From NCBI GenBank assembly GCA_002269645.1, contig NIVC01004695.1, positions 1-37,836 of the forward strand: 37,836 bases of DNA, read 5' to 3'. Shown here piece by piece: positions 1,290 through 37,836 of the stretch (its first letter is position 1; every line of letters begins with the position of its first letter). Below the pieces are notes generated by a model that worked only from the letters and a program-made list of their open reading frames with translations, was not told the DNA's origin and searched no databases. This DNA comes from Macrostomum lignano. Its lineage: Eukaryota. The position numbers and the translations under genes were made by a program.

Positions 1290-3412
1290 GTAGCTCGTGT
1301 CTATCTACCCCTTCTATCGTGTGTCTATCTACCTCTCTATCCCGTGCCTATCTACCCCTTCTATCGTGTGTCTATCTACCATCACTATCGTGTCTATCTA
1401 CCATCTCTATCCCGTGTATATCTACTCCTTCTATCGTGTGTTTATCTACCAACTCTATCCGTGTCTATCTACCATCTCTATCCCGTGTATATCTACTCCT
1501 TCTATCGTGTGTCTATCTACCATCTCTATCCCGTGTCTATCTACCCCTTCTATCGTGTGTCTATCTACCATCTCTATCCCGTGTCTATCTACCCCTTCTA
1601 TCGTGTGTCTATCTACATCTCTATCCGTGTCTATCTACCCCTTCTATCGTGTGTCTATCTACCATCTCTATCCCGTGTCTATCTACCATCTCTATCCCGT
1701 GTCTATCTACCCCTTCTATCGTGTGTCCATCTACCATCTCTACTCTATCTACCATCCTATCCCGTGTCTATCTACCATCTCTATCCGTGTTATCTACTCT
1801 TCTATCGTGTGTCTATCTACCATCTCTATCCCGTGTCTATCTACCATCTCTATCCGTGTCTATCTACCCCTTCTATCGTGTGTCTATCTACCATCTCTAT
1901 CCGTGTCTATCTACCATCTCTATCCCGTGTCTATCTACCCTTCTATCGTGTGTCCATCTACCATCTCTACTCTATCTACCATCCCTATCCGGTGTCTATC
2001 TACCATCTCTATCCCGTGTATATCTACTCCTTCTATCGTGTGTCTATCTACCATCTCTATCCCGTGTCTATCTACCCTTCTATCGTGTGTCTATCTACCA
2101 TCTCTATCCCGTGTCTATCTACCCTTCTATCGTGTGTCTATCTACCATCTCTATCCGTGTCTATCTACCCCTTCTATCGTGTGTCTATCTACCATCTCTA
2201 TCCCGTGTCTATCTACTCCTTCTATCGTGTGTCTATCTACCATCTCTATCCCGTGTCTATCTACCATCTCTATCCCGTGTCTATCTACCCTTCTATCGTG
2301 TGTCCATCTACCATCTCTACTCTATCTACCATCCCTATCCCGTGTCTATCTACCATCTCTATCCCGTGTATATCTACTCCTTCTATCGTGTGTCTATCTA
2401 CCATCTCTATCCCGTGTCTATCTACCATCTCTATCCCGTGTCTATCTACCCCTTCTATCGTGTGTCCATCTACCATCTCTACTCTATCTACCATCCCTAT
2501 CCCGTGTCTATCTACCATCTCTATCCCGTGTATATCTACTCCTTCTATCGTGTGTCTATCTACCATCTCTATCCCGTGTCTATCTACCATCTCTATCCCG
2601 TGTCTATCTACCCCTTCTATCGTGTGTCTATCTACCATCTCTATTCCGTGTCTATCTACCCCTTCTATCGTGTGTCTATCTACCATCCCTATCCCGTGTC
2701 TATCTACCATCTCTATCCCGTGTCTATCTACCCCTTCTATCGTGTGTCTATCTACCATCTCTATCCGTGTCTATCTACCATCTCTATCCCGTGTCTATCT
2801 ACCCCTTCTATCGTGTGTCTATCTACCATCTCTATTCCGTGTCTATCTACCCTTCTATCGTGTGTCTATCTACCATCCCTATCCCGTGTCTATCTACCAT
2901 CTCTATCCCGTGTATATCTACTCCTTCTATCGTGTGTCTATCTACCATCTCTATCCCGTGTCTATCTACCATCTCTATCCCGTGTCTATCTACCCTTCTA
3001 TCGTGTGTCTATCTACCATCTCTATTCCGTGTCTATCTACCCTTCTATCGTGTGTCCATCTACCATCTCTACTCTATCTACCATCCCTATCCGTGTCTAT
3101 CTACCATCTCTATCCCGTGTATATCTACTCCTTCTATCGTGTGTCTATCTACCATCTCTATCCCGTGTCTATCTACCCCTTCTATCGTGTGTCTATCTGC
3201 CATCTCTATCCCGTGTCTATCTACCCCTTCTATCGTGTGTCTGTCTACCATCTCTACTCTATCTACCATCCCTATCCCGTGTCTATCTACCATCTCTATC
3301 CCGTGTCTATCTACTCCTTTTATCGTGTGTCTATCTACTACTCTCTATCCCGTGCCTATCAACCATCTCTAGTCTATCTATCATCTCTATCCCGTGTCTA
3401 TCTACCATCTAA
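1290..3412. repeat. ~2.1-kb intronic minisatellite of 24-bp monomers (CTATCTACCATCTCTATCCCGTGT / CTATCTACCCCTTCTATCGTGTGT) with an 18-bp variant
   Basis: Read directly. It fills most of the 2377-bp MPST intron (1184-3560) and explains the long repetitive ORFs. Confidence 0.95.
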
Positions 3413-3560
3413 CCATTTTATCTCCTATCTAGCCTGCATATATCTAGCTAATCTAATACCAAATCTAATCTTTTGAGTCACACAGTTCGACTGTAGCATA
3501 TCTATCAGCACCGTGTACATCTCCCGTACCAATTTACGCCATGCACCTTATTTTCCTCAC

Positions 3561-4089
3561 CTGCACAGACGCAGACTGCAACGCCTTGCAAAACTCTTCA
3601 AAAGACCGATACAGAGCACTTTTCTTATCTTCGCTAGCTTGAAATTCAACCGACTGATAAACGGTTTTTAATGGGCCGCTGGTCACTCGCCGACCCTCGG
3701 CAACCCAGGCAGCCAGGCCTCCATCTAACACGCTGACAGCCTCGTGGCCAAACATGCGAAACATCCACCAGACCCTTGGCGCAAACATGCAATTATCGTA
3801 GACAATAACATGGCTATCATTGCCGATACCAGGCGTTTGCCAACGTACTCGGCAAACTGAGCAGAGCTGGGCAAAGTGTTTGAGAAGCCAGTTTCTCTGG
3901 CGCTGCATTCTGGCACGCTGAAATGTCTGGCACCGGGAATTCTTGGCGCCGCGGCGAATGAGGTTTCCACTGGGCCGGGTAGCCGCCGGCATCAAGTATT
4001 CGAATTTTGTTATTAGCGGCATTGGATAGTCTGCTGGCCAGCCATGAACTGCTGACCAGAGCTGGGGTGACCGCCTGTCTGGCTGCCAT
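3561..4089 (-). CDS. MPST: MPST/rhodanese-type sulfurtransferase, exon 1 (N-terminal rhodanese domain), two frameshifts as assembled
   Basis: ATG at 4089. Motifs ALVSSSWL..KIRILDA, RIPGARHF..TLPSSAQFAEYVGK and GIGNDSHVIVYD..APRVWWMFRMFGHEAVSVLDGGLAAW fall in three successive frames (shifts near 3972 and 3831). Donor CAG|GTGAGG at 3560 is phase 0 and joins SVQ to VADARS of exon 2. Confidence 0.85.
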
Positions 4090-9974: not shown

Positions 9975-12048
9975 CTTGACTTACTTGACTTACTTGGCTG
10001 TCCCAGAGGGACACAGCGGGAAGGCGCGAACACCCATTCTGCTAATCCCTGAATGGCCGACGCGTCGCTATAGATGAAGGGTTGGCGCCGCCCAGGGAGG
10101 TCCCCCAGTGTCGCAAGCAGCTATAGTGCTCTCTGGAAATGAGAGTTCAGCCCTGCGGGTGGCCCGAAGGCAGCGCATGAGCTGATTAAAGTTTTCGGGT
10201 TTGCACGCTTCAGTAATAGATGTGTGTGACCCGAGGTAAGTGAGTCTGGCTCGCGTAAAGGCGGGACAGATGCTGACGAAATGCTCAGCGGTTTCGTCAC
10301 CTGAGTTACAGAAGCTTCAGGTGGCGTTGGTGGCGTTGCCCTGCAGGTACTGGTGCCTAGAGAAGCAGCCGTGACCTGAGAGGGTCATGGTGGCAGCCCG
10401 GATGTCTCTGCGCGAGAGGCTCAAGAGGAGCTTCCGGAGCTGGTGAGAGGGCTGAGGGACAGCGCCTCTGGATTGCCTGCAGGTAGTGCAGTTCGCCCAA
10501 GTCGAGCGGTGCTGGGTCCTGATCCACGTTTTGATTCGCGAGTCAATGACACAGCCAGGAATCGGGACAAGGGGTTCGGGACCGAGAGAGGAGCCGGAGG
10601 CGCCAACTTTTGCAAGGGCGTCAGCCAACTCATTTCCTCGGATCCCCATATGCCCCGGAATCCGTTTAAGGGTGATTTTGTTGGTGGAGATCAACACGTT
10701 GAGGAGTTTGATACAGTCGAGGACTGTATCAGAATTGGTGCTGCAGCCACTGATGGCGTGCAAGGCAGCTTTGCTGTCCGAATGGAAAATGATGTTCTTA
10801 CCGGTAACGCCAGTGGCGAGGACCTCTGCGATGCGGGAGCTGATGGCGAGAACTTCATTTTGGAAGACACTGGAGTTGACCCCAGTGTACTGAGCGTGGG
10901 TTGCGATGACCCTTCCGTTCAGGAAGATTCCAACACCAAAGCCGGTGTTGGCTGACTGTTTAGAACCGTCGGTGTAGCAATGAAGCTCACCAGGGTTCCA
11001 GTGGTCATTGATGGTATCGCATGAGTCGATAGCTACAGAGTAGCGTTGTCTCAGGTTGAGCGTTGAGGCAATGCCATCGGTGAAGACGCGATTGGCCTGA
11101 CACTCGTTGAGAATGTTGAGGCACAGGTCGCTATGCGGGACGAGGTTCCGCTTAGCAGGTGCCCTCATGTAAAGGAATTTGACACCGGCATCGAGTAAAC
11201 GCCGCGTCGTTCTAGCCGCCTCACCCCTGACGAAGAGGTCGAGAGGCGGTAGATTAAGGAAGGCCCCCATGCCGGCAAAGGGCGTGGACCTGGTGGCGTT
11301 GCAGATAAGCCTACACGCTCTGCCCTGGATCGTGTTGAGCAAATCTGCATGACTTTTGACCTGGGTAGCGCTGACCCAGACAACCGAGGCGTACGTAATG
11401 GCAGGTCTAACTACGGAAGTGTAGATCCACCAAAGTCGCTTTGTGGATAGACCCCAAGAGGTGCCAAGTGCTCGTCGGAGCTGGGCCAGGATGGCTGAGG
11501 CACGCTTGGCATTTGCTTTCACGTGGAAGGACCAGTTGAGCCGGTGGTCAAGTATGACCCCGAGACATCTGGTCTGGTGCGCGAAGGCAATATCTCTGCC
11601 GTATAGCTGCAGAGGTCGTATGTTCCAGCGTATTCTGTGGGTGAACATATGGCAACAGTTTTGGGCTCAGATAGTTCCAGACCGTTGTCATTGGCCCAGG
11701 ATTCTGCTTTGCGGATAAAGCTCTGCATCAGATCCCTGAGCGTGCTGGGGGATGGCCCTGCCACAATGGCAGTGACGTCGTCAGCATACCCGACTTTAGG
11801 ACGGGATCAGGTCGGGAGTCGCCCAGAAGAGCGTCCATGACCAGGTTCCAGAGCGTCGGGGTGTGGACTCCGCCTTGGGGTCCGCCCTTACAGACTCTGG
11901 CGGAGGCAGTTTGCCCGAGAAGTTGGGCAGTGACCGTACGGTTAGAGATCATGTACATGATCCACCGTATGAGGGTAACGTGAGCTTTGCGGTTTTGAAA
12001 GGCCCTCGCCCTTCAAATATCTAGTTATAGCTATAGCTATAGCTATAG
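9975..12048 (-). mobile_element. 5'-truncated, inactivated non-LTR retrotransposon (I group, R1/Loa-like) with partial RT, RNase H and CCHC knuckle
   Basis: Minus-strand RT motifs: LDI-EG-AF (~12000-12024), GGPQGGVHTPTLWNLVMD and YADD (11777-11788). RNase H motifs: YTDGS, FQNEVLAI, HSDS, GHMGIRGNELAD. The knuckle [TGA]SFC-x8-H-x4-C follows 10317, with final TAG at 10068-10070. 3' tail is (CAAGTAAGT)2.5. TSD is TGCATATGTATCGG (9961-9974) / TGCATACATGTATCGG (12049-12064). Frameshifts near 11795 and 11650. Confidence 0.92.
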
Positions 12049-12953
12049 TGCATACATGTATCGGATATACTCGTACATGTATGCACGTAACCACACCCAA
12101 TATTGTAGATCACGTTACCCACATGCTTGTTCATAGGTTTCTGAATAGAAACTCGAGCCGCCTTTGAATTGAACTACATTGGCTGAATAATTGAACGCAC
12201 AGTATATAGCTAAGCGACTTAATTTCGCTGTTTATTAGTATACGCGAGCGGAAATTTATGTCAGGAGTTCAATTCTGTCCACGAGAATTGCCTGCCTGCG
12301 TAGGGGTGTCTTCGCTATATATTAACATGCAATATATAGTTTGCTTATTTCGGATCCCATTTTGAGCCCAGTTGCTCATGCATGTAGATTAGCTCGTATT
12401 GAGTCCGAAATAAGATACAGGGGGGGGGGGGCGCTGCATTGAGTCAAAGCAACTGCAAGGCCACGGGTTTTTTTCAGAGTGAGCATTCTCAGTCCACATG
12501 AGTTTGCATTAAATAATTCTGGCATGATATAGTGCTGTATTTACTCAGGGTGGTTATGAAATGCTTGAGCTTAATAATGTACCAATGTGAATTATAGTTG
12601 AGCAATTGAAAAGAAGGGATCGAAGTCATTTAATATGAGAATGTGAACTCCCGGTACAGCTGGTTAACTCTCGATCCGGGGTTGAGCTTACAGTTTTAAT
12701 CGCCTATAATATTTTTGCGTAACAGATCGCGCACCCAATAATTTCCTCCGATTATATAGAGCAGTGCAGGACAAGGCGGAGAAGAATTCAAAAAAGCTAT
12801 AGTTAGGGTGCCATAAAAAACCCAGAGCAAGATCCACAAGCTCCTAAACTGAACATTTCTCGCTTAAGACGCCACATACCAGGTATTTTACCGATCTACA
12901 CATCTATAAAACTAATTAGAAACTAAGTTTCCGGCGCAGTGTTTTCTTCACTA

Positions 12954-14486
12954 ATGGATGATACTAAGCAGCAACCGGAAACGGTGAAAAATGTCTGCAT
13001 GACGGAGACTTCTCGGCGAAAATGCCTTCTGCTAATGAGCGCCTGTTTAATTCTGATGATGGCTGGCCAGTGTGTCTCAGGCCCTATATTTGCCAATTTC
13101 ATAAAGTTCAGCTATGGACTAAACCAGAGACAACTGGACTTTAGCGTTGCTCTACTGTACCTGGGAACAGTGCTAATCTTTCTCAGCGGACTCTTTTACG
13201 ACCGTTTTGGTACGAGAGCTTCGGTCGTCTTCAGTGGCGTCCTCTCCACGCTGTCCATGACTTTTGTTGCCGTCGCAATGGCGTATCCAGAGCCGCTGCG
13301 CCAGAACTTATGGCTGCTGTTCATTCTGCTGTTCCTGTACGGTCACAGCTTCAACTACAGCTACGTGGCTGCGATTGGTTGCTGCATGAAAAGTTTCTCA
13401 TCGAGTCAACGTGTCTTTGTCATGACGCTGGCGGACAACTTCTTCAGTCTGGGTCCCCCAGTTGTGGCCTTCATCTACTACGTGGTCTTCGACAATATGC
13501 ACAGAAGTAACACCGACCAGAGACCTGTAGGCACCCGGATCGTGCTCCTAGTTTTAAATGCCACTATTCATGTGTTCGCTTTTATCTTTCTAACACCGTT
13601 CGATGATTCTTTGGATAAAGAAAAACCTAGCGAATCGAGCCCTATTCTAGACAAACAGCCACCGGAACAGGATCGACAGAAACTACAGGATGCATTCAAC
13701 TCTAACATGAACGAAACGCATACTGCGACGGCTGAGACGATCGACACTCGACCGCAGGACGGTTTCCTGACGCAGACACAATACTTTTTTACCGTGTGCT
13801 GCTCAGATCGCTTCATGCCTCTCATGCTGGGCGTTGCTCTGTCCATCGGAGCAAACCTGACAACCTTTCTAAACCTGACTAGCGTCACTCGAAGTTTGTC
13901 GCTGACTCAATACGACGTTTACTATTTTTGGTTTCCAACTCTGGTGGGCATAGCTTGGCGCTGTCTGATTGGGCTTCTTACTGACAGACACCTACCGAAG
14001 GCAAGTCATCGATCTGCTGTTTTGCTTGCCAGCGTGGTCTGCTTCGGCGCTCCTTCGACGCTGCTTCTTAGCGTCCCACTGCTTCCAGGCGTGTCAGCTT
14101 TTGGTATTACGATTACGGCCTACGTTTTTGATAGTATCAACAACGCCACCCTATTCACCATTCCACCCGTGATCATCTCTATGACTGAAAAGCCGCACCT
14201 GTTCGGACGGCTCTACTCTTCCTGTCTTCTTTTAGCTTCAACAACTGGCCTGCTTCTTATTCTGCAATTCGGCGCTCTGTACGACGCTCAAATTCGAACA
14301 ACTTCCGGTGATAAGACAGGCGGCGTCGCGTTCAATTCCACGGCCCCTGGGACTGCTGCTAGCATACCGGAGTGCTTTGGCTACGTCTGCTACATGTACG
14401 GAGGCGTGGCAAGCACTGTGTGCCAGCTTGTGTCCATCGTTTGCTTCTCCTACTATACAATTTCTTTGCGGCGGGCCAACTTGTGA
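12954..14486 (+). CDS. Intronless major facilitator superfamily transporter, nodulin-like/NFD4/Mch1-type, ~510 aa
   Basis: Uninterrupted ORF with first in-frame ATG at 12954. About 12 hydrophobic helices in two bundles flank a hydrophilic central loop. MFS motif-A-like GLFYDRFGTR and GLLTDRHLP; N-terminal FANFIKFSYGLNQRQL resembles nodulin-like MFS. Subfamily assigned from memory. Confidence 0.85.
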   Translation: MDDTKQQPETVKNVCMTETSRRKCLLLMSACLILMMAGQCVSGPIFANFIKFSYGLNQRQLDFSVALLYLGTVLIFLSGLFYDRFGTRASVVFSGVLSTLSMTFVAVAMAYPEPLRQNLWLLFILLFLYGHSFNYSYVAAIGCCMKSFSSSQRVFVMTLADNFFSLGPPVVAFIYYVVFDNMHRSNTDQRPVGTRIVLLVLNATIHVFAFIFLTPFDDSLDKEKPSESSPILDKQPPEQDRQKLQDAFNSNMNETHTATAETIDTRPQDGFLTQTQYFFTVCCSDRFMPLMLGVALSIGANLTTFLNLTSVTRSLSLTQYDVYYFWFPTLVGIAWRCLIGLLTDRHLPKASHRSAVLLASVVCFGAPSTLLLSVPLLPGVSAFGITITAYVFDSINNATLFTIPPVIISMTEKPHLFGRLYSSCLLLASTTGLLLILQFGALYDAQIRTTSGDKTGGVAFNSTAPGTAASIPECFGYVCYMYGGVASTVCQLVSIVCFSYYTISLRRANL

Positions 14487-19228: not shown

Positions 19229-21255
19229 TCCGTTAAGTGGCAAGCAGCGAGCATAGCTTGCATCTGACAGACATTTAACCTAAGCTAAACCAAGCTTAAC
19301 TAACACTGGCTTGAATTCCATTGGCTCTGGCGCACCATTCAGTGTAGTGCCTTTCAAGGGCTGAAACGCAACAACGTTAAATCAAATAATTTAAGGAAGT
19401 AAAACAGGCATTTACTGGCTTGAGAACTGCAGTTTGGCAGATAGTTTATTCATGAAGGCTTAATGCTACAATTCAACTTTTGTGAGAGTTCATCTTATTA
19501 GCCAAGTCAAAGATGAGTTTGCCTGACAAGTAATGATCTTGAAAAGTCGTTCACATTCTACGATAGTTGATCAGCCGTGCAGTAAATTATTTATAGGTTA
19601 CTGCGATAAACTGCTTGAGAATTCAACTCATTTTTATTGTTTATCCGCCTCGCCAGTTATGTACTTTTCTGGTTCACTGAGGAGACATGTTTCCAAGAAA
19701 ACTAGGTTTTTTTTCCTTTGCTTTGTTCCACTTCCTTTTTCTCAACTTTGCAATACTGAAAATTGGAAATTAAATATTTATTTTTCCATTGAGCAATAAG
19801 ATAAATATGAAGAGTTAAAAATAGATAATCAATGCTCAATGTCATAAAAGCTAAAAACCATTGTCTTGCAAATAAAATCAGAATATTGGAATCAAGCAGG
19901 AATTTCTAAAAAATACATGCATAATTTTAACAGTTTCTCCTTCGTCTGCAAAAATATAAAATTAGCTAAAAAATACAATTGGACTACTCAAATCTGAGGG
20001 AAAACTACGTTTCTGGGAATATTTTAGGAGGTAGGTTTCACCGAAAAAGCATTACGGATCAAGATAAGAGGTTTTTTATTTTTAATTCAGTACAAAAAAT
20101 GTTGGCTATCGCTTTTGATTGGAAACAGACTCATTGTTCATCTTTTGATGTCAATTGTCTTTATTATAGCTTTTCATTTAAAATTAGGATCCTATGTTAA
20201 TTTTATATGCTGCCTACAATCCTACATGTACTGCACCGTACATGTAGTCATTATCGATTTTATGATTTTTAGCTTAATGACGGTGTAAATATGTGTAACA
20301 GCTAATAATAAAAATAGATTCACAAAACTAATGAATCTTAATGTTGTGCCATTTTTAATGATTTTTAGGCATACAACATGCACTTAGGATATAATTTCGA
20401 ATGTAGTTTTTCGGTAAAAAAACGATTCCTAGAAATTTCTCAAGAAACATAGTTATTTCCTGTCCTTCTGCTTGAGTAGTCTTTGCCTTAATACCCTGCG
20501 GTTGACAGCTTTGGTACAAGCATGAGAATAGGTTCTACCGGATATATGCAGAATCCACGGATGATAGAGCAAGAAGAAATTTTCTACAGAGTCGATCCGT
20601 CTGCTGTAGGGTGTCCCACCGCTGCTCAGTATGACCTGCTGCCCAAATACTCGCTCAGCGAGTATGAGTTTACCCTCTCCTGTAGCAACTGAATAATTAA
20701 TGCCAGAATGTAGGCATCCTGCAGTATCTTGCATGCAGGGTAGCTAGGCAAGTGTAGAAAACCTTTGTGCTAGTGTTTAATCTGGGTAGAAATCACCTTT
20801 CTTATTATTTAGTGTACATGTAAATGGACTGAATTACAGTTCTTACTGCCAGTAAACCTGCGTTCATCATTGCCAATTTAGAGGTGAACTTTTGGCACCT
20901 GCTCAGTGCCACTGCATGCCAATTATCCAGTGCACAAGATGAACCAGATCAATGCATTTGTTCACCTTATAACGACTTGTTTACTAATCAAACATTGAGT
21001 TGGTAGAATGCTTTAAAAATTCTGGCTTTATTCTCCATATTACATTTTCAGCTTCAAGCACCTCCAGTTTGGATAACCTTTATACTGAAAAATTGCAAAC
21101 TTAAAGTACTACTATAAGTGCTACAAATGCAAGTAGTAGGAAACGTTTTATGGAGACATATTTTACTAAAGCGTAAGCCACAGTGGCAGAGGGGCGCAAC
21201 ACGCCCCCTCCCCTAGTAAGCTGACAAAATGATTTCACACCTCAGCACCTACTCT

Positions 21256-21751
21256 GGCGCCCCTTGGTGCTGGCGCCCCTTGGTGCTGGCGCCCCTTGGT
21301 GCTGGCGCCCCTTGGTGCTGGCGCCCCTTGGTGCTGGCGCCCCTTGGTGCTGGCGCCCCTTGGTGCTGGCGCCCCTTGGTGCTGGCGCCCCTTGGTGCTG
21401 GCGCCCCTTGGTGCTGGCGCCCCTTGGTGCTGGCGCCCCTTGGTGCTGGCGCCCCTTGGTGCTGGCGCCCCTTGGTGCTGGCGCCCCTTGGTGCTGGCGC
21501 CCCTTGGTGCTGGCGCCCCTTGGTGCTGGCGCCCCTTGGTGCTGGCGCCCCTTGGTGCTGGCGCCCCTTGGTGCTGGCGCCCCTTGGTGCTGGCGCCCCT
21601 TGGTGCTGGCGCCCCTTGGTGCTGGCGCCCCTTGGTGCTGGCGCCCCTTGGTGCTGGCGCCCCTTGGTGCTGGCGCCCCTTGGTGCTGGCGCCCCTTGGT
21701 GCTGGCGCCCCTTGGTGCTGGCGCCCCTTGGTGCTGGCGCCCCTTGGTGCT
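21256..21751. repeat. Perfect 16-bp tandem array (GGCGCCCCTTGGTGCT) x31
   Basis: 496 bp equals 31 units; no variant unit seen. Confidence 0.97.
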
Positions 21752-22130
21752 GGCTCAGATCTTCATCGAATTTTCATCGAGCTGGCGCTTCAAAAGCAGT
21801 TTGAGCAGCGTGAGGCATGAGCATTGCGGAATGGGCGACGCTCGCCTCCACGCTGCGTCTTCGGACCGCCATGCAGCTAAGAGGCATGAGCAATTTTCAA
21901 CTCGTTTATGTACTACAAGGGTCGACATGTATTCCTACAATATTCCATGCTGGACGAGTGTCTGTACGCTCCCAGGCTCTCCACTTCCACCTCGAAGTGT
22001 CCGTACGCCTCGGGGTCGCCACTCTCTCGCCTATCACACCCGGCAAGCTCTGGGCAGTCCGACCCCCGAACCCCCGATCACCCCGTCTGCGGCCCACACG
22101 GACGGAAGCAAAAAATACAACACTAGCACT
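21752..22130 (+). mobile_element. Degraded fragment of a second RNase H-containing non-LTR element (post-RT region to start of RNase H)
   Basis: Mosaic translation AQIFIEFSS..LQKQFEQ..ALR..GDARLHAASSDRHAA..EQFSTRL...PSAAHTDGSK parallels the RT-thumb-to-RNase H connector and the YTDGS motif of the element at 10-12 kb. Confidence 0.45.
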
Positions 22131-25639: not shown

Positions 25640-28600
25640 ATGTCAACCGTCAGGCGCTCAAGTCGCCAGTCGGTCAGCCGGGCCGGTGTCCTGGAGAACC
25701 TTCGGCTTCAACTGAGCAGCAACTCTCGACAGTCGTCTGGGGATAATTTAGTCCAGGCCTACCTGCTTCAGCGGCAGGCCTCTCTGACGGCTTCCCTGTC
25801 GTCGTCCGCAGGCGGCGGTACGCTGCTGAGTGACAGCCTGCAGCGGGCGCGGCTTGGCTACCTGATTCAGGAGCGCCAGCTCTCCTGCTCTCTGCGACGG
25901 AGGCGATCTTCGGCTTACAGACGCGAGAACAGCCTGTCAGCGATGGTTGCCAGGCAGAAACCCGGCGACTCAATTCGGGAAGAGCTGGGCTGCGACAGCG
26001 AAGAATTGGAAGCAAAGAGGCAGCGAATGGTAATGCAGTTTGATACGAATTTTACCTGCTAAGCCTTTTATTTTTAATTTATTTTGGGGGGGGGGGTGGT
26101 CGTGCACGAAATTGACAGCCATGAAAGCCAACTACCCAAGGCACAGAGAGTGTACACGTCTGACGATCGACGCAGAATTGCCTTCAACGCTGATTGATTG
26201 TCACCAGTCAATTGTGAAGATGTCACCAAAAGGCGTTGCGCTAGGGTGTCTACAGCCCTCTTTTATTATTCGTCATAACTGGCCATTCGAAGGTATCTTT
26301 TGAATGCAGACATTTTCCATAGCCTACACCTCGTCATTTTGCATTTTTCAGAAGCAGCTGCGGCTTCAGTTGAACTTTTACTATCGTCTAGTGATTGCCG
26401 TGTTCAGGCTGTGCTGTCAACACCGTCTGACTTGGTGAGAAATCTATCTTGTTCATAATCGTGTCGATTTATACCATCTTCAAATTGAATTTTCTTGCTC
26501 TGTATGAAACAGAAAGTCAGACCGTAGCCCCGTGGTCTAGCGTAGATCTCTATATGCGTATTTGCCAGCGGCCCAGGCTCGATTCCAAGTGCAGTCACAT
26601 TAATTTGGAGCTGAATTGGAATATCGGCTTGGCTCTGCTCGTGCAATTAACGGCCTTGAGGGCCAACCCCCAAGGCACAGTGAAGTGTACATGCCTAACG
26701 ATAAATAAAGTTTGTGCCGCTGTACACTCCTGTGTGAGTGTGTGCCTGTTCGTATGACTGCGTACGTATCCGCCCGCTCGTGTGCCTGCTCAGGGTAGTC
26801 TTTATAAAAGAGCTGTCGCCAATCCCCTCGTTGCAGCCGCAGATTGGGCAACACGTTCCGCTCGCAGCAGCAGACCATAGACTTGAGCCGCAGCAGCAAC
26901 AGTAGCTTCGGCGGCGGTCGCTACTCGGTGTTCAACAAGGCCGAGTTCAAAGCCAACCGGCAGATGCGGCTGTCAGCTGAGACGCGAAGAGTTTTGGCCA
27001 AGTGTCCGGAGGAGCGCAGTGAGGAAGAGATTAACTATGTTAGTGACATCGGGCGGAGTTAATGCAAATCAAAAGTGCAGGATGTTTTTTGGCAAATCTA
27101 AAAAGCTTATTGCTATCGGGGGATGCTTTGCTCGGGGGAATAGCTGTGTCAAGTCTGGGAGGGAATTGCTAAGATGTCACGGCTTACTGGGGAATTGCTA
27201 AGATGTCAGGGCTTGCTGAGGAATTGCTGAGATGCCAAGGCTTGCTGGGGGAATTGCTGAGATGTCAAGACTTGCTGAGGAATTGCTGAGATCTCAAGGC
27301 TTGCTGGGGGAATTGCTGAGATGTCAAGAATTACTGGGGGAATTGCTGAGATTTCAAGGCTTGCTGGGGGAATTGCTGAGATGCCAAGGCTTGCTGGGGA
27401 GAATTGCTGAGATGTCAAGACTTGCTTAGGAATTGCTGAGATGTCAAGACTTGCTGAGGAATTGCTGAGATCTCAAGGCTTGCTGGGGGAATTGCTGAGA
27501 TGTCAAGAATTACTGGGGGAATTGCTGAGATTTCAAGGCTTGCTGGGGGAATTGCTGAGATGCCAAGGCTTGCTGGGGAGAATTGCTGAGATGTCAAGAC
27601 TTGCTGAGGAATTGCTGAGTTGTCAAGGCTTGCTGGGGAGAATTGCTGAGATGTCAAGACTTGCTGAGGAATTGCTGAGTTGTCAAGGCTTGCTGGGGGA
27701 ATTGCTGAGATGTCAAGGCTTGCTGCGGGGAATTGCTGAGATGTCAAGGCTTGCTGCGGGGAATTGCTGAGATGTCAAGGCTAACGGGGGAATTGCTCAG
27801 AAGTCAAGGCTTGCTCGGGGGAATTGCTGAGATGTCAAGGCTTGCTGGGGGAATTGCTGAGATATAAAGGCTGAAGTCAGGAGATACATGTAGTTTACTT
27901 AAAATTAATTCTTTTATTACATTCTTTTTGTTCTCTTCAACGGGGGGCGTATATTGCTACTCTAAAAGGCTTACAAATGAATTCAGCAAAATGAAAGGAC
28001 CTTTGGTGAGTTTGTATGTACTACTTCATTAAATAATAAATGTTACTTGAAGGCCCAAAGTTAAGAAAAACTTGTGTGAAAAATTCAATCAGCAAAAGTG
28101 CTAGCTTTTATGTCTGTAATAAAAATATGAGACCGTATAAACAGGAGGCAGTACTGGCTAAACCCCGACATTTTGTAAATCCGTGAACTGCTCATTTCCA
28201 GGCGGTGATTGCGCTCAGAGGCATTCAGCAGCTGGCTGACTATCCGGTGCGGATGCAGCGGAATCTAGCCCGAATGGGAGTGCTGGAAAGGTAAACTCGC
28301 GGTGGCTTGATTCCATTCGAACTTTTATTTAGCTTATTAGAAATTGATCGGCCGTTGACAGCTATGAATCTGGTCGAGTTATTGTGCGGCAGAATGACCC
28401 GGCTCACGCGTTCTACTTCATCACCTATGGTGTTGGTGAGTAAACTTTCTATGCAGATTGTAAAGAGATATTTTGTAAAAACGTTGGAGGGTCCAATTGG
28501 TGAGTTGCTTTTGTCCTGCGGAAGCGATATTTTGAGTGTTATTAGTATCACGGAAACTTTACTAGCAAGAATTTACACTACTTGACTTTTCTACACTGTA

Positions 28601-31600: not shown

Positions 31601-32619
31601 ATAGTTATAACAAATTAATTGAAGACACCATTTTCACACAAAAAGTTAAAAAATATAGTTCGGCTTCAATTGTAGCACTTTCTAAGTTTTCTAGGAAAAC
31701 GATGCAATTTTAATTAAATAAAACACTTCAATTGTAGCACTTTCTAAGTTTTCTAGGAAAACGATGCAATTTTAATTAAATAAAACACTTCAATTGTAGC
31801 ACTTTCTAAGTTTTCTAGGAAAACGATGCAATTTTAATTAAATAAAACACTTCAATTGTAGCACTTTCTAAGTTTTCTAGGAAAACGATGCAATTTTAAT
31901 TAAATAAAACACTTCAATTGTAGCACTTTCTAAGTTTTCTAGGAAAACGATGCAATTTTAATTAAATAAAACACTTCAATTGTAGCACTTTCTAAGTTTT
32001 CTAGGAAAACGATGCAATTTTAATTAAATAAAACACTTCAATTGTAGCACTTTCTAAGTTTTCTAGGAAAACGATGCAATTTTAATTAAATAAAACACTT
32101 CAATTGTAGCACTTTCTAAGTTTTCTAGGAAAACGATGCAATTTTAATTAAATAAAACACTTCAATTGTAGAAAGCTGCGTACATACTCTTTCAGCAGCA
32201 GAAACCCGTGTTTACTAAGCCATTAACCATAAAAAGATACTTCCTCGCAGGAACTGCCGGCATCGGGTAGTCCTGAGTTCGTTCGCCTGTGCACCCTGAC
32301 CCGTGGTGGCGTCTTCGGTCTTCAGCACCTGTTCCAGCAGCCGACGGGCTCGTCGCAGCGCAACCAACAGCCGAGCCTGTGCGTGGTTAGCAACGGGGCG
32401 GAATGCCTACTGCTCGACCGGCAATTCTTCATCGAGCAGGCGCCCAGAAAGCTGCTGGACAGGCTGCGCAACCAGATCGATCAGTTTCCGAGTCGCGAGG
32501 AGCTGCAGCGCCGGCTGCAGTCAGCCATGGATTGGGAGGCCTACAAGCGGATGCTGGTCGAGGCGTTGATGGAGGAGAAGAAGCTCACTCGTCCGCTGAC
32601 AGGCGTTGATAGAAAGTGA
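25640..32619 (+). CDS. CNBD2: Cyclic nucleotide-binding domain protein (CNBD2-like), 13 coding exons, ~684 aa from the ATG at 25640 (true start may lie upstream)
   Basis: Hand-traced GT-AG exons with consistent phases: 25640-26029, 26352-26434, 26837-27038, 28202-28290, 28362-28435, 29097-29257, 29687-29757, 29844-29921, 30003-30063, 30485-30856, 30955-30982, 31267-31343, 32251-32619 (2055 nt). Translation gives PEERSEEEINY, YPVRMQRNLAR, YESGRVIVRQNDPAHAFYFITYG, LNKGDSFGELAIVNRSQRQSTVVC, WIYIVKSG and TLTRGGVFGL..VVSNGAEC..DWEAYK. Orthology is from memory, not a search. Confidence 0.85.
26520..26709 (+). mobile_element. Second, distinct tRNA-derived SINE-like element in CNBD intron 2
   Basis: A-box-like TAGCCCCGTGG (26525), B-box-like GGCTCGATTCC (~26576) and an ATAAATAAA end at ~26709. 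Single copy in the window. Confidence 0.4.
27134..27873. repeat. ~30-bp intronic minisatellite (GGGAATTGCTGAGATGTCAAGGCTTGCTGG), ~24 units with higher-order structure
   Basis: Read directly; units of 29-31 bp in CNBD intron 3. Confidence 0.95.
28700..28994 (+). mobile_element. Full-length tRNA-derived CORE-SINE, copy 2 (CNBD intron 5)
   Basis: A box TAGCCTAGTAG (28708) and B box GGTTCGATTCC (28752). CORE-like block TGTGTCCTTGAGCAAGACACTTAACTCTG..TTCAGTT..CTGTAAAATGGG (28782-28842) resembles the MIR core as I recall it. 3' hairpin CTGCCC-ATCA-GGGCAG (28966-28981). Confidence 0.88.
30316..30393 (+). mobile_element. 5'-truncated CORE-SINE copy 3 (3' tail only)
   Basis: AGCCTTCAGATGCGCCGCGCAATAGCTGCGGCTGA..GTCGGTTGCACA.CTGCCCAT matches 28916-28982. 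CCTTCAGATG is duplicated at the 5' junction. Confidence 0.85.
31664..32171. repeat. Perfect 62-bp tandem array, 8.2 copies, in the last CNBD intron
   Basis: Unit TTCAATTGTAGCACTTTCTAAGTTTTCTAGGAAAACGATGCAATTTTAATTAAATAAAACAC; 31665+8x62=32161, then a partial unit. Confidence 0.97.
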
Positions 32620-32808: not shown

Positions 32809-33463
32809 CTGAGACACTGAGACACTGAGACACTGAGACACTGAGACACTGAGATACTGAGACACTGAGACACTGAGACACTGAGACACTGTGACACTGA
32901 GACACTGAGATACTGAGACACTGAGACACTGAGACACTGAGACACTGTGACACTGAGACACTGAGATACTGAGACACTGAGACACTGAGACACTGAGACA
33001 CTGAGACACTGAGACAATGAGACACTGAGACACTGAGACACTGAGACACTGAGACACTGAGACACTGAGACACTGAGACATTGAGATACTGAGACACTGA
33101 GACACTGAGACACTGAGACACTGAGACAATGAGACACTGAGACACTGAGATACTGAGACACTGAGACACTGAGACAATGAGACACTGAGATACTGAGACA
33201 CTGCGACATTGAGACACTGAGACACTGAGACACTGAGACACTGAGACACTGAGACACTGAGACACTGAGACACTGAGACACTGAGATACTGAGACACTGA
33301 GACACTGAGACACTGAGACACTGAGACACTGAGATACTGAGACACTGAGATACTGAGATACTGAGGCACTGAGTTACTGAGATACTGAGACATTGAGACA
33401 CTGAGACACTGAGACACTGAGACACTGAGACACTGAGACACTGAGACTCTAAAACACTGAGAC
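32809..33463. repeat. 8-bp microsatellite (GAGACACT)n, ~80 copies with point variants
   Basis: Read directly; variants include GAGATACT, GTGACACT and GAGACAAT. Confidence 0.97.
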
Positions 33464-33949
33464 GCAAGTCTTTAACGTTTTTGGCTCCCAGACTCTCTCG
33501 AATGACGATAAAATGTTTCACGCTTTTGCCTGTGAGAGATTCCGTTTAAAGGGCACTTCAAACTGCCAATTTTTTGGAAATGAGAAACTCTATGAGTATC
33601 TAAAATGTTTCTGTCAATTATTTTATGTCATTAGGTATCAGTCATTGTGTTTGTGTCTCCCATGTTGGCGCAACCGTAACCTCTTCTGAAATATCCAAAA
33701 TATTGGAGATTTTGTTTTTGGTCATTCATCTATTTCGAAGTCTAGCAGATCCATTTTTCATGATAGTCAGAGTGGTTTCCGAACTGCCTTATAAAATTGC
33801 TTGATGGATTTTTTTCATTTTATGGAGCATTTTCAAGCACTCGTGGATTAGATAAATACGATAACCTATAACGAGCAGATAGGACACCTAAAAGCTTTAC
33901 AATTCGTCCCACTAAAAATCGTCAAAACCTTTAGCCGAGTGACTGGAAA

Positions 33950-34408
33950 ATGCGTTTGCTTTCAATGAATATTTGGTTTGCAAATTTCCTGCCACTGGCA
34001 TTCGGTAATTTGTGCCCCCAGCCTTACAGCCTCCGGGCTGGCAAGTGCGTCCATATTAATGAGTTAAACAGTCACACGTGGTGCAAAGCGAACGCTGAGT
34101 GCATCTCAATCGGAGGGGAGCTCATCAGCAACTACGGCACCCTGATCCTGCTTGGCAGCATGTCAATTTCGGTTCCCAATCATCTTTGGCTTGGAGTCAC
34201 CGACTTGCCTGACGAGAGAGACAGGAGCAGGTCTGGCTGGCATTTGATCAACAACAAAGGAGTTCTGCCGCTTAATGATACATTGTGGGGGACCGAGGAA
34301 CCTAATAATATTGACAAAAACCAGGACTGTTTAATCATGCAGCAAAATGCTCCGGGCAAGTTGGCTGATCTCCCCTGCTCGAACCTGCGCGGCTTCATGT
34401 GTGAATAA
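33950..34408 (+). CDS. Secreted C-type lectin domain protein (152 aa to the first stop)
   Basis: Signal-peptide-like N-terminus. CTLD cysteine pattern CPQ..KC..EC..GGEL..WLGVTD..W..EPNN..QDC..LADLPC..FMCE, with the EPN motif. Single exon. Confidence 0.88.
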   Translation: MRLLSMNIWFANFLPLAFGNLCPQPYSLRAGKCVHINELNSHTWCKANAECISIGGELISNYGTLILLGSMSISVPNHLWLGVTDLPDERDRSRSGWHLINNKGVLPLNDTLWGTEEPNNIDKNQDCLIMQQNAPGKLADLPCSNLRGFMCE

Positions 34409-34690
34409 GTCGCCGCGCTGCAGACTGCAAATTCGAGTCAAACCACTTGGAGACCAGCAGCTTTCAAGGCTCGGCACTTCAACCGCAACACTGAGTACTG
34501 CTATAGCGATCTGAAGAAGGTGAAAAATTCGGTCGCTTGCGTGGCCGCCTGCATGCGAGCGAGAACCTGCCGACATGCGCTGTACCACAGGAAGCTGCAC
34601 GACTGCCGCCTGCTGCTGTTCACGGATGCCCAAGTGGAGGAGAGCATCGAGACGAACCCAGACTGGGTGAAGTACAGCCTGCAGAACTAA
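34409..34690 (+). CDS. In-frame PAN/Apple-like domain continuation behind the lectin TAA (93 aa)
   Basis: Same frame as 33950 (741 nt in total). Contains CVAACMRARTCRHALYHRKLHDCRLL, the C-x3-C-x5-C-x11-C PAN core. Ends TAA at 34688-34690. Confidence 0.7.
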   Translation, partial: VAALQTANSSQTTWRPAAFKARHFNRNTEYCYSDLKKVKNSVACVAACMRARTCRHALYHRKLHDCRLLLFTDAQVEESIETNPDWVKYSLQN

Positions 34691-35429
34691 TGTTGAACAA
34701 CATTGACAACTCAAATGTGAACTTTATTTATTAATTCACTAATCTTTCCAGCAATTTTTAAAATCAAAATTACCTGTTCATATTTGCGAACTTTTTAGAC
34801 AGAAGTTAAACCTCAATAATAAATTATTCTATGTAAAAATAGCATATTTTGTTCATCTATCCGAAGTTTTCTTCTGAATTCTTTTTCAATATACTGTGGC
34901 GGACGAGTGCAAGCGCACCTGAGGACGGCCGTTTAGGTGCCCTCGCGCCCACCTCATCACGCCGCGTCTATGCTCCACCCACCCCGGAGATTAGGGGTGG
35001 GGGTTCGCCCAACCAGCCTGAGCTACGTGGGGGTTGGGGTTGACTGACTAACTAGCACGTTGGCCTATTTAACCTGATTGTGCGCACATGCTTGTAAGAA
35101 CTTTTTGCTCTCCGCAAATACAATTTCAAGTCTGCAAGCAGTAGCAACTGCCCGCTTCAATACGATATTACGAGACTGACAATCCAAGAGAACAAAAACA
35201 GCTAAAATTTCTTCAAATATTTACCTGCTTAGGTGAAAATTCTAAGGAAAACGGTTTAATAAAGTTTATGGATCAAGACGCACACATGGTTCAATATAAG
35301 TTTTGAAACTTGAAGTTTTCTAGTACGTCAAAGCATTAAGATGGTAGATTGTGTCTATGGTAAAACCATATGCATAAGCACATTTTCACATGTTTTAACG
35401 TGTATAAATAATATTAATATTAATAATAA

Positions 35430-37119: not shown

Positions 37120-37836
37120 CTGTGCTCAAATCCCCGCTCAAATCTCTGCTCAAATCTATGCTCAAATTCCTGCATAAATCCCTGCATAAATCCCTGCATA
37201 AATCCCTGCATAAATCCCTGCTCAAATATTTGCTCAATTTCTTGCTCAAATCCCTGCTCAAATCCCTGCTCAAATCCCTGCTCAAATATTTGCTCAAACT
37301 TCTGCTCAAATCCCTGCATAAATCCCTGCATAAATCCCTGCTCGAACTTTTGCTCAAATCCCTGCTCAAATCCCTGCTTAAATTCCTGCTCAAATCCCTG
37401 CTCAAATATTTGCTCAAACTTCTGCTCAAATCTCTGCTCAAATCCCTGCTCAAATCCCTGCTCAAATCCTTTCTCAAATTTCTGCTCAAATATTTGCTCA
37501 AACTTCTGCTCAAATCTCTGCTCAAATCCCTGCTCAAATCCCTGCTCTATTTGCTCATATTTGCTCAAACTTCTGCTCAAATCCCTGCATAAATCCCTGC
37601 ATAAATCCCTGCTCGAACTTTTGCTCAAATCCCTGCTCAAATCCCTGCTCAAATCCCTGCTCAAATATTTGCTCAAACTTCTGCTCAAACTTCTGCTCAA
37701 ATCCCTGCTCAAATCCCTGCTTAAATATTTGCTCAAACTTCTGCTCAAATCCCTGCATAAATCCCTGCATAAATCCCTGCATAAATCCCTGCTCGAACTT
37801 TTGCTCAAATCCCTGCTCAAATCCCTGCTCAAATCC
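37120..37836. repeat. 12-bp tandem array (GCTCAAATCCCT with GCATAAATCCCT, GCTCAAATATTT and GCTCAAACTTCT variants) running off the right edge
   Basis: Read directly; about 60 units. Confidence 0.95.

Follow-up and report, generated by a model that had tools for sequence, protein, structure and literature searches.

An in-frame TAA at the domain junction of a C-type lectin–PAN gene in Macrostomum lignano

The lectin–PAN gene and its surroundings

The window, i.e. the whole 37,836-nt stretch of DNA that was analyzed, carries on its plus strand a single-exon region (33950–34690) whose 246 codons form one frame, interrupted only by one internal stop. An in-frame TAG six codons 5′ of the ATG at 33950 (33932–33934, plus strand; found by direct reading and in the ORF list) bounds the ORF, so this ATG is the earliest start possible. 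The ‘cctttag’ stretch that holds the TAG could be a 3′ splice or trans-splice acceptor. In the translation, the start codon opens a hydrophobic N-terminal segment (MRLLSMNIWFANFLPLAFG, residues 1–19; 33950–34006) that is a probable signal peptide and aligns with the hydrophobic N-termini of full-length members of the CTLD+PAN family described below. It is followed by a long-form C-type lectin-like domain (CTLD; residues 22–152; 34013–34405), delineated with Pfam PF00059 and family alignments, and then by the premature in-frame TAA at codon 153 (34406–34408), for which sequence and translation give the local reading GFMCE-TAA-GTC, so that the base after the stop is G. The TAA is located two codons past the last CTLD cysteine (Cys151) and closes a lectin ORF of 152 codons (33950–34408). 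Beyond it, the same frame remains open for 93 codons (34409–34687). These codons comprise an inter-domain linker (codons 154–182; 34409–34495), placed by alignment with relatives, and a PAN/apple-type domain (codons 183–246; 34496–34687), placed with Pfam PF00024 and alignments. The frame ends at a second TAA, followed by T (34688–34690), which appears to be the ancestral terminal stop as it coincides with the C-terminus of family members, one of which (P0034) likewise finishes ...VVQN. An earlier note on this DNA had described a CTLD ending in FMCE-TAA at 34406–34408, followed by 93 open codons with a linker and an intact PAN-type core and no further lesion. All of its coordinates were confirmed, and the PAN assignment held, with a PF00024 match above the cut-off and the invariant residues retained. 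A pattern search placed the earliest plus-strand AATAAA 3′ of the gene at 34818–34823, 128 nt past the second stop, and found none in the interval separating the two stops; the motif presumably acts as a poly(A) signal, and its position is that expected for the long ORF. On the minus strand, an antisense ORF of 127 codons without stops (34331–34714) overlaps the PAN region and is the usual by-product of a high-GC3 coding sequence.

The lectin half matches Lectin_C (PF00059) over residues 41–152 with an E-value of 1.2e-9 and 39.3 bits (cut-off 22.6), covering profile positions 2–106 of 107. A profile of the CTLD+PAN family in turn matches solved CTLDs, among them mannose receptor C type 2 and DC-SIGN, from profile position 19 to ∼155 with E-values down to 3e-22. 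The cysteines of this half comprise the long-form N-terminal pair Cys22/Cys33, the canonical Cys51, Cys127, Cys143 and Cys151, and an extra Cys45 (34082–34084). In the alignments, the canonical cysteines, the Cys22/Cys33 pair and the LWLGVTD core occupy invariant or near-invariant family columns, and the cysteines would be expected to pair in the canonical manner. At the motif positions of the Ca2+/sugar site (EPN or QPD, and WND), which we take from established knowledge of CTLDs, the window protein has EPN at residues 116–118 and LAD in place of WND at residues 138–140; the Asn is missing in the relatives too. Because WND is replaced by LAD, carbohydrate binding by this lectin is uncertain.

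The downstream piece matches PAN_1 (PF00024) with an E-value of 2.8e-5 and 24.3 bits against a cut-off of 21.4, and precomputed PF00024 matches exist for two family members (P0153 and P0154). The window PAN domain contains Cys184, Cys197, Cys201, Cys207 and Cys219 together with the invariant residues T225, D226, W239 and K241; the four cysteines of the core are conserved across the family. An AlphaFold model of the two-domain protein has an overall pLDDT of 51, with confidence confined to residues ∼180–246, where the block-mean pLDDT is mostly 71–93 (62 in one block) and the order of secondary structure elements is E-E-H-E-E-H-E. When this confident C-terminal part was used in a Foldseek search, almost all of the top 39 matches were PAN/apple-type modules, although all were weak (E ≥ 0.03, none at E ≤ 0.001). 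In the family alignment, seven conserved cysteines belong to the lectin half and five to the PAN half, and Cys45 and Cys184 (34499–34501) have no canonical partners inside their own domains. The odd number of cysteines in each half makes an inter-domain disulfide between Cys45 and Cys184 plausible, and the 7+5 pattern suggests a disulfide-linked two-domain unit.

Several other features were noted in the window. An intact single-exon gene for an MFS (nodulin-like) transporter is located at 12939–14486 on the plus strand, and its best match is the M. lignano protein A0A1I8GQV2 (51% identity). On the minus strand, an ORF with a rhodanese-like domain (3534–4022; Pfam E = 7.6e-7) may represent an exon of a sulfurtransferase gene that a 24-bp satellite interrupts, and a retroelement fragment with an RNase H domain occupies 10317–11648; the latter is matched by residues 384–458 of P0004, an M. 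lignano gene model in which a globin-like part, a CTLD–PAN part and a retroelement are fused into a chimera. Also on the minus strand are tandem duplicates of a DXD-motif glycosyltransferase (Pfam PF04488; 18069–19243 and 22822–24163), in which a PF12919 match spans only 27 residues around the DXD motif. The duplicates share 98.5% identity along 855 bp, with 13 differences; three of these are single-base differences in homopolymer length that break the frame of both copies and reflect either residual long-read errors or two young pseudogenes. Homogeneous tandem arrays with 100% matches and no indels are found at 21254–21754 (16 bp × 31) and 31664–32171 (62 bp × 8.2). Mini- and microsatellite arrays at 1296–3410 (24 bp × 91), 27161–27872 (60 bp × 12), 32809–33463 (8 bp × 82) and 37123–37836 (12 bp × 60) yield long spurious ORFs in several frames, and the 8-bp array stops 0.5 kb 5′ of the lectin gene. 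No paralogues of the lectin–PAN gene were found inside the window.

A family of CTLD–linker–PAN proteins

An exhaustive phmmer search of 1.84 billion representatives, in which the stop position of the query was replaced by X, returned 424 matches, and many of these are proteins of 238–276 amino acids that cover query positions ∼20–245 in one stretch through the stop. A word-indexed homologue search with the fused query gave no match at E ≤ 0.001, but this index is lossy, as an alignment-seeded search missed several of its own input sequences. The members share a common plan. A signal peptide is followed by a CxxP(F/Y)...GxC pair and a CTLD that has a WIGLTD core and an EPN region and closes with C(Q/E) (alignments A1 and A2), and then by a variable linker of ∼30 residues and a PAN core of the form C-x3-C-x5-7-C-x11-C with TDA...W.KF. 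The earlier statement that CTLD–PAN fusions exist is thus borne out by a family of ∼240-aa secreted proteins whose frame is open across the junction. Since homologues match both halves unbroken and have a sense codon at the junction, the presence of CTLD and PAN in one polypeptide is the ancestral architecture and the TAA a derived state.

The nearest relative (P0001) is the M. lignano UniRef entry A0A1I8JSG6, which is 54% identical to the window protein and in which the match is formed by the last ∼190 residues of a gene model that is chimeric and 738 aa long. The second nearest (P0002) is encoded by L001, an environmental contig (ENA ERZ27315224, k141_2599464), and is 53% identical. The window gene is of a flatworm type, with its nearest annotated relatives in M. 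lignano. Together with the best match of the window MFS gene, also in M. lignano, this places the window among flatworms and speaks against an insect or mosquito origin, which composition and repeats had suggested at first. At the position of codon 153, both nearest relatives have Phe (...ACE-F-V...; TTC in L001), and more distant members have Pro, Arg, Thr or Met. No relative with a stop at this position was found among the 1.84 billion representatives, in which the closest matches are ∼53% identical. Upstream in L001, an in-frame TGA lies just 5′ of a signal-peptide-like segment (positions 100–140) and the ORF contains no in-frame ATG, so its start may be on another exon or trans-spliced, or the contig may be frameshifted.

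Two further members have disrupted reading frames. L003, a distant member encoded by an environmental scaffold (ENA ERZ23499590, scaffold_26481), was inspected because its product is short and is therefore not independent evidence; it has a TAA-G in the linker at 649–651, eight codons past the last lectin cysteine, and a 1-nt deletion in the PAN core at about position 800, with an intact lectin ORF. This pattern looks like decay of the PAN part after truncation and not like readthrough. In L005, a Tara Oceans metagenome contig (ENA ERZ976238), the frame changes just before the last lectin cysteine, and the PAN-side sequence runs on in another frame to the contig end. A scan of JGI metagenomes with the family alignment returned one generic CTLD locus without a PAN domain, and a literature search found no paper on a ∼240-aa CTLD+PAN family. 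The family, which ranges from Macrostomum-type flatworms to organisms represented in environmental assemblies, marine metagenomes among them, is coherent and apparently undescribed so far.

Coding signal downstream of the premature stop

The 279 nt downstream of the TAA at 34406–34408 have the properties of coding sequence. The segment remains open in just 2.7% of mononucleotide shuffles, and its other two forward frames contain three and two stops. GC contents at codon positions 1/2/3 are 0.53/0.45/0.74 downstream of the stop and 0.47/0.41/0.62 in the lectin part; in the same comparison the flanks of the gene are flat at ∼0.37–0.43. The open downstream frame is not due to chance. The linker is colinear with the linkers of relatives, the conserved Trp167 included, and is 31–33% identical to those of the nearest relatives. 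In the PAN domain, identity to the two nearest relatives is 60–63%, compared with 52–56% in the CTLD.

Relative to L001, the PAN domain has a dN of 0.28 and a dN/dS of 0.29, and the CTLD a dN of 0.45 and a dN/dS of 0.14, with dS saturated (synonymous divergence between the window gene and its nearest relative is about 1 or more). Distances of the window PAN domain to outgroups are no larger than those of the relatives’ PAN domains, which indicates that there has been no lineage-specific acceleration. All family-invariant residues are present in the window PAN domain, including cysteines that the nearest relatives have lost. No second lesions (extra stops or indels) and no raised dN were found over the 279 nt. 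These comparisons point to long-term purifying selection on the downstream region.

In a simulation in which the 279 nt drifted neutrally, with indels set at one tenth of the substitution rate, the joint probability that neither a new stop nor an indel had arisen was 0.15 at a divergence of 5% and 0.02 at 10%. The absence of second lesions fits only a very recent event, with a neutral divergence since the stop arose of below ∼0.08 (5% level). Either the premature stop is very young or the downstream region is still translated.

Origin of the premature stop

We consider that the premature TAA is probably a recent nonsense allele or an incipient pseudogene. The gene is one copy of a flatworm-type family of single-exon genes for ∼240-aa secreted CTLD–linker–PAN proteins, in which a sense codon at position 153 (Phe in the two nearest relatives) would have changed to TAA. 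Translation would then stop two residues past the last lectin cysteine, giving a lectin-only precursor of 152 residues, and the 279 nt that encode the linker and PAN domain would become 3′ UTR. With neither a second lesion nor an excess of amino-acid changes downstream, the change would have to be very recent, and the copy either a segregating nonsense allele or an incipient pseudogene; as the best matches are just ∼53% identical and an orthologue was not found, this absence of decay is the only bound on the age of the stop. The copy has one disabling change, the TAA at codon 153 where homologues are open, and the signs of relaxed constraint expected of a pseudogene are absent downstream of it. 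Disabled copies elsewhere in the family (L003 and L005) support a nonsense mutation; against it speaks the position of the stop exactly at the domain junction, where a random hit is not most likely to fall (the linker holds about 12% of codons). We infer a genuine TAA, efficient termination at it and secretion of the truncated protein. With a real stop, the 3′ UTR would grow from ∼130 to ∼410 nt (first AATAAA at 34818), and exon-junction-dependent NMD would not apply because the gene has a single exon. Truncation would also leave Cys45 unpaired, given the putative inter-domain disulfide. The earlier note had proposed a nonsense allele that leaves a stand-alone lectin. The recent nonsense mutation stands as the favoured reading, whereas a clean stand-alone product may be doubtful in view of the odd 7+5 cysteines.

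An assembly or base-call error, behind which the true codon would be a sense codon (e.g. Tyr, Leu or Phe) in a normal 246-residue two-domain protein, is possible, although we think it rather unlikely. The rest of the gene is intact and constrained, as expected in the absence of any lesion. Single-base differences in homopolymer length are typical of residual long-read consensus errors, and three differences of this kind break the frame between the two glycosyltransferase copies of the window. The lesion in the lectin–PAN gene, however, is a substitution and not a homopolymer indel, and the two homogeneous tandem arrays, about 1 kb in total, are identical between copies without indels, which argues for a low random consensus error. 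A weak point against an error is that eight single-residue ‘sense’ versions of the 246-aa product have no exact match among 15 billion proteins; exact look-ups of the 152-aa product and of the window MFS product in the protein collection gave no match either.

Programmed readthrough, in which most product would be a lectin-only isoform and a regulated fraction would insert a near-cognate amino acid at the UAA to give lectin–PAN, is improbable. It would account for the intact downstream ORF, its coding composition and its long-term constraint, and the stop occupies a variable linker position at which relatives have F, P, R, T or M. L003 has a linker TAA-G as well, but it was chosen for its short product and its frameshifted PAN part indicates that the downstream region is decaying there. 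Eukaryotic termination is most efficient at UAA with a purine after it, and the context in the window is UAA-G and not UGA, a 3′ C or the UGA-CUAG type. Furthermore, the stop is missing from the nearest relatives (∼53% identical, with no close orthologue among the matches), and the 120 nt 3′ of the stop fold no better than shuffles (MFE z = 0.11). An Rfam scan of the window returned no match, and a literature search found no case of readthrough in flatworms. In its boldest form, a functional leaky stop would yield two secreted proteins, the lectin by itself and a lectin joined to PAN by a disulfide, and linker stops would recur in the family (the window and L003). This form is highly improbable; if true, it would be the first case in a flatworm of readthrough at the level of domains, in a UAA-G context that is regarded as tight.

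Removal of the stop from the mRNA, whether through a short intron or through A-to-I editing of its two adenosines (UAA to UGG), is extremely improbable. Short introns are common in flatworms, and besides the 23- and 25-nt GT..AG pairs that had been listed previously, the sequence contains frame-preserving pairs of 39, 54, 57 and 60 nt (donors 34399 and 34401; acceptors 34437, 34452, 34457 and 34460), so the pairs in the earlier note exist but its list was incomplete. Its conclusion that splicing is unlikely to bypass the stop nevertheless holds for all candidates: because there is no GT or GC between the Cys151 codon (34400–34402) and the TAA, each GT/GC-AG candidate that spans the stop, the frame-preserving ones included, deletes or replaces the invariant Cys151. 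Such an intron would also drop linker residues that are colinear with relatives, its acceptors lack pyrimidine tracts, the ‘intron’ is G+C-rich with coding periodicity, and the genomic contigs of relatives are colinear here without an intron. Editing would have to act twice on the same codon, and the local sequence is not predicted to fold stably. Nuclear reassignment of TAA was rejected, as two other ORFs run for 866 codons in total without an in-frame stop and the gene’s own terminal TAA falls at the family C-terminus; independent translation of the PAN part was rejected as well, as no in-frame ATG precedes the PAN core.

The order of the earlier note, with a nonsense allele ahead of a base-call error and of readthrough, was thus kept on the basis of the sense codon in relatives and the constraint downstream. 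Two of the checks it had proposed have now been made: alignment of relatives at the stop codon gave Phe in the two nearest and a stop in none, and dN/dS downstream of the stop (0.29 for PAN against L001) gave no sign of neutral decay. In summary, the locus represents a damaged or mis-called member of the CTLD+PAN family, with no new mechanism involved. It is routine for one copy of a multi-copy, lineage-specific family to carry a single nonsense codon, and the locus would gain mechanistic interest only through a demonstration of readthrough. In annotation, it should carry a flag as a possible pseudogene or a site of low quality. A real stop would mean that domain loss by nonsense mutation is seen here at its first step, and L003 may show a later stage of it.

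When the window copy is compared with A0A1I8JSG6 and L001, the long-form CTLD, the linker of ∼30 residues, the PAN domain and the matching C-terminus are common to all three, and the matched coding region of L001 likewise has no intron. The two relatives differ from the window copy in having Phe at codon 153 and in the loss of one or two PAN cysteines, which are retained in the window copy and in distant members. No synteny was found between the window and the M. lignano gene models, which are chimeric. Members of the wider family (P0024, P0032, P0034, P0153 and P0154; ∼240 aa; from ENA, Logan and JGI environmental and run assemblies) share the cysteine and motif plan of the window protein; unlike the window copy, all have a frame that is open across the junction, and they are only 24–31% identical to it. 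The window PAN domain may share with solved PAN/apple modules a helix packed against a five-stranded sheet and a two-disulfide core, the top (weak) fold matches of its predicted model being the HGF N domain, the plasminogen N-terminal domain and SML-2 of Sarcocystis muris. It differs from these modules in its low identity (14–21%, Foldseek E of 0.03 or weaker) and in the fifth conserved cysteine, Cys184, which has no intra-domain partner.

Readthrough extensions in insects are usually a disordered tail and not an ancestral folded domain. Across insect species, readthrough stops are conserved with few exceptions; most are TGA with C on the 3′ side, RNA structure often follows them, and readthrough is preferentially lost at TAA (10.1101/051557). 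The window stop, in contrast, is TAA-G, has no counterpart in relatives and is not followed by such a structure. What the window gene has in common with the readthrough genes of Drosophila and Anopheles is an in-frame stop that is followed by a second ORF with protein-coding signatures.
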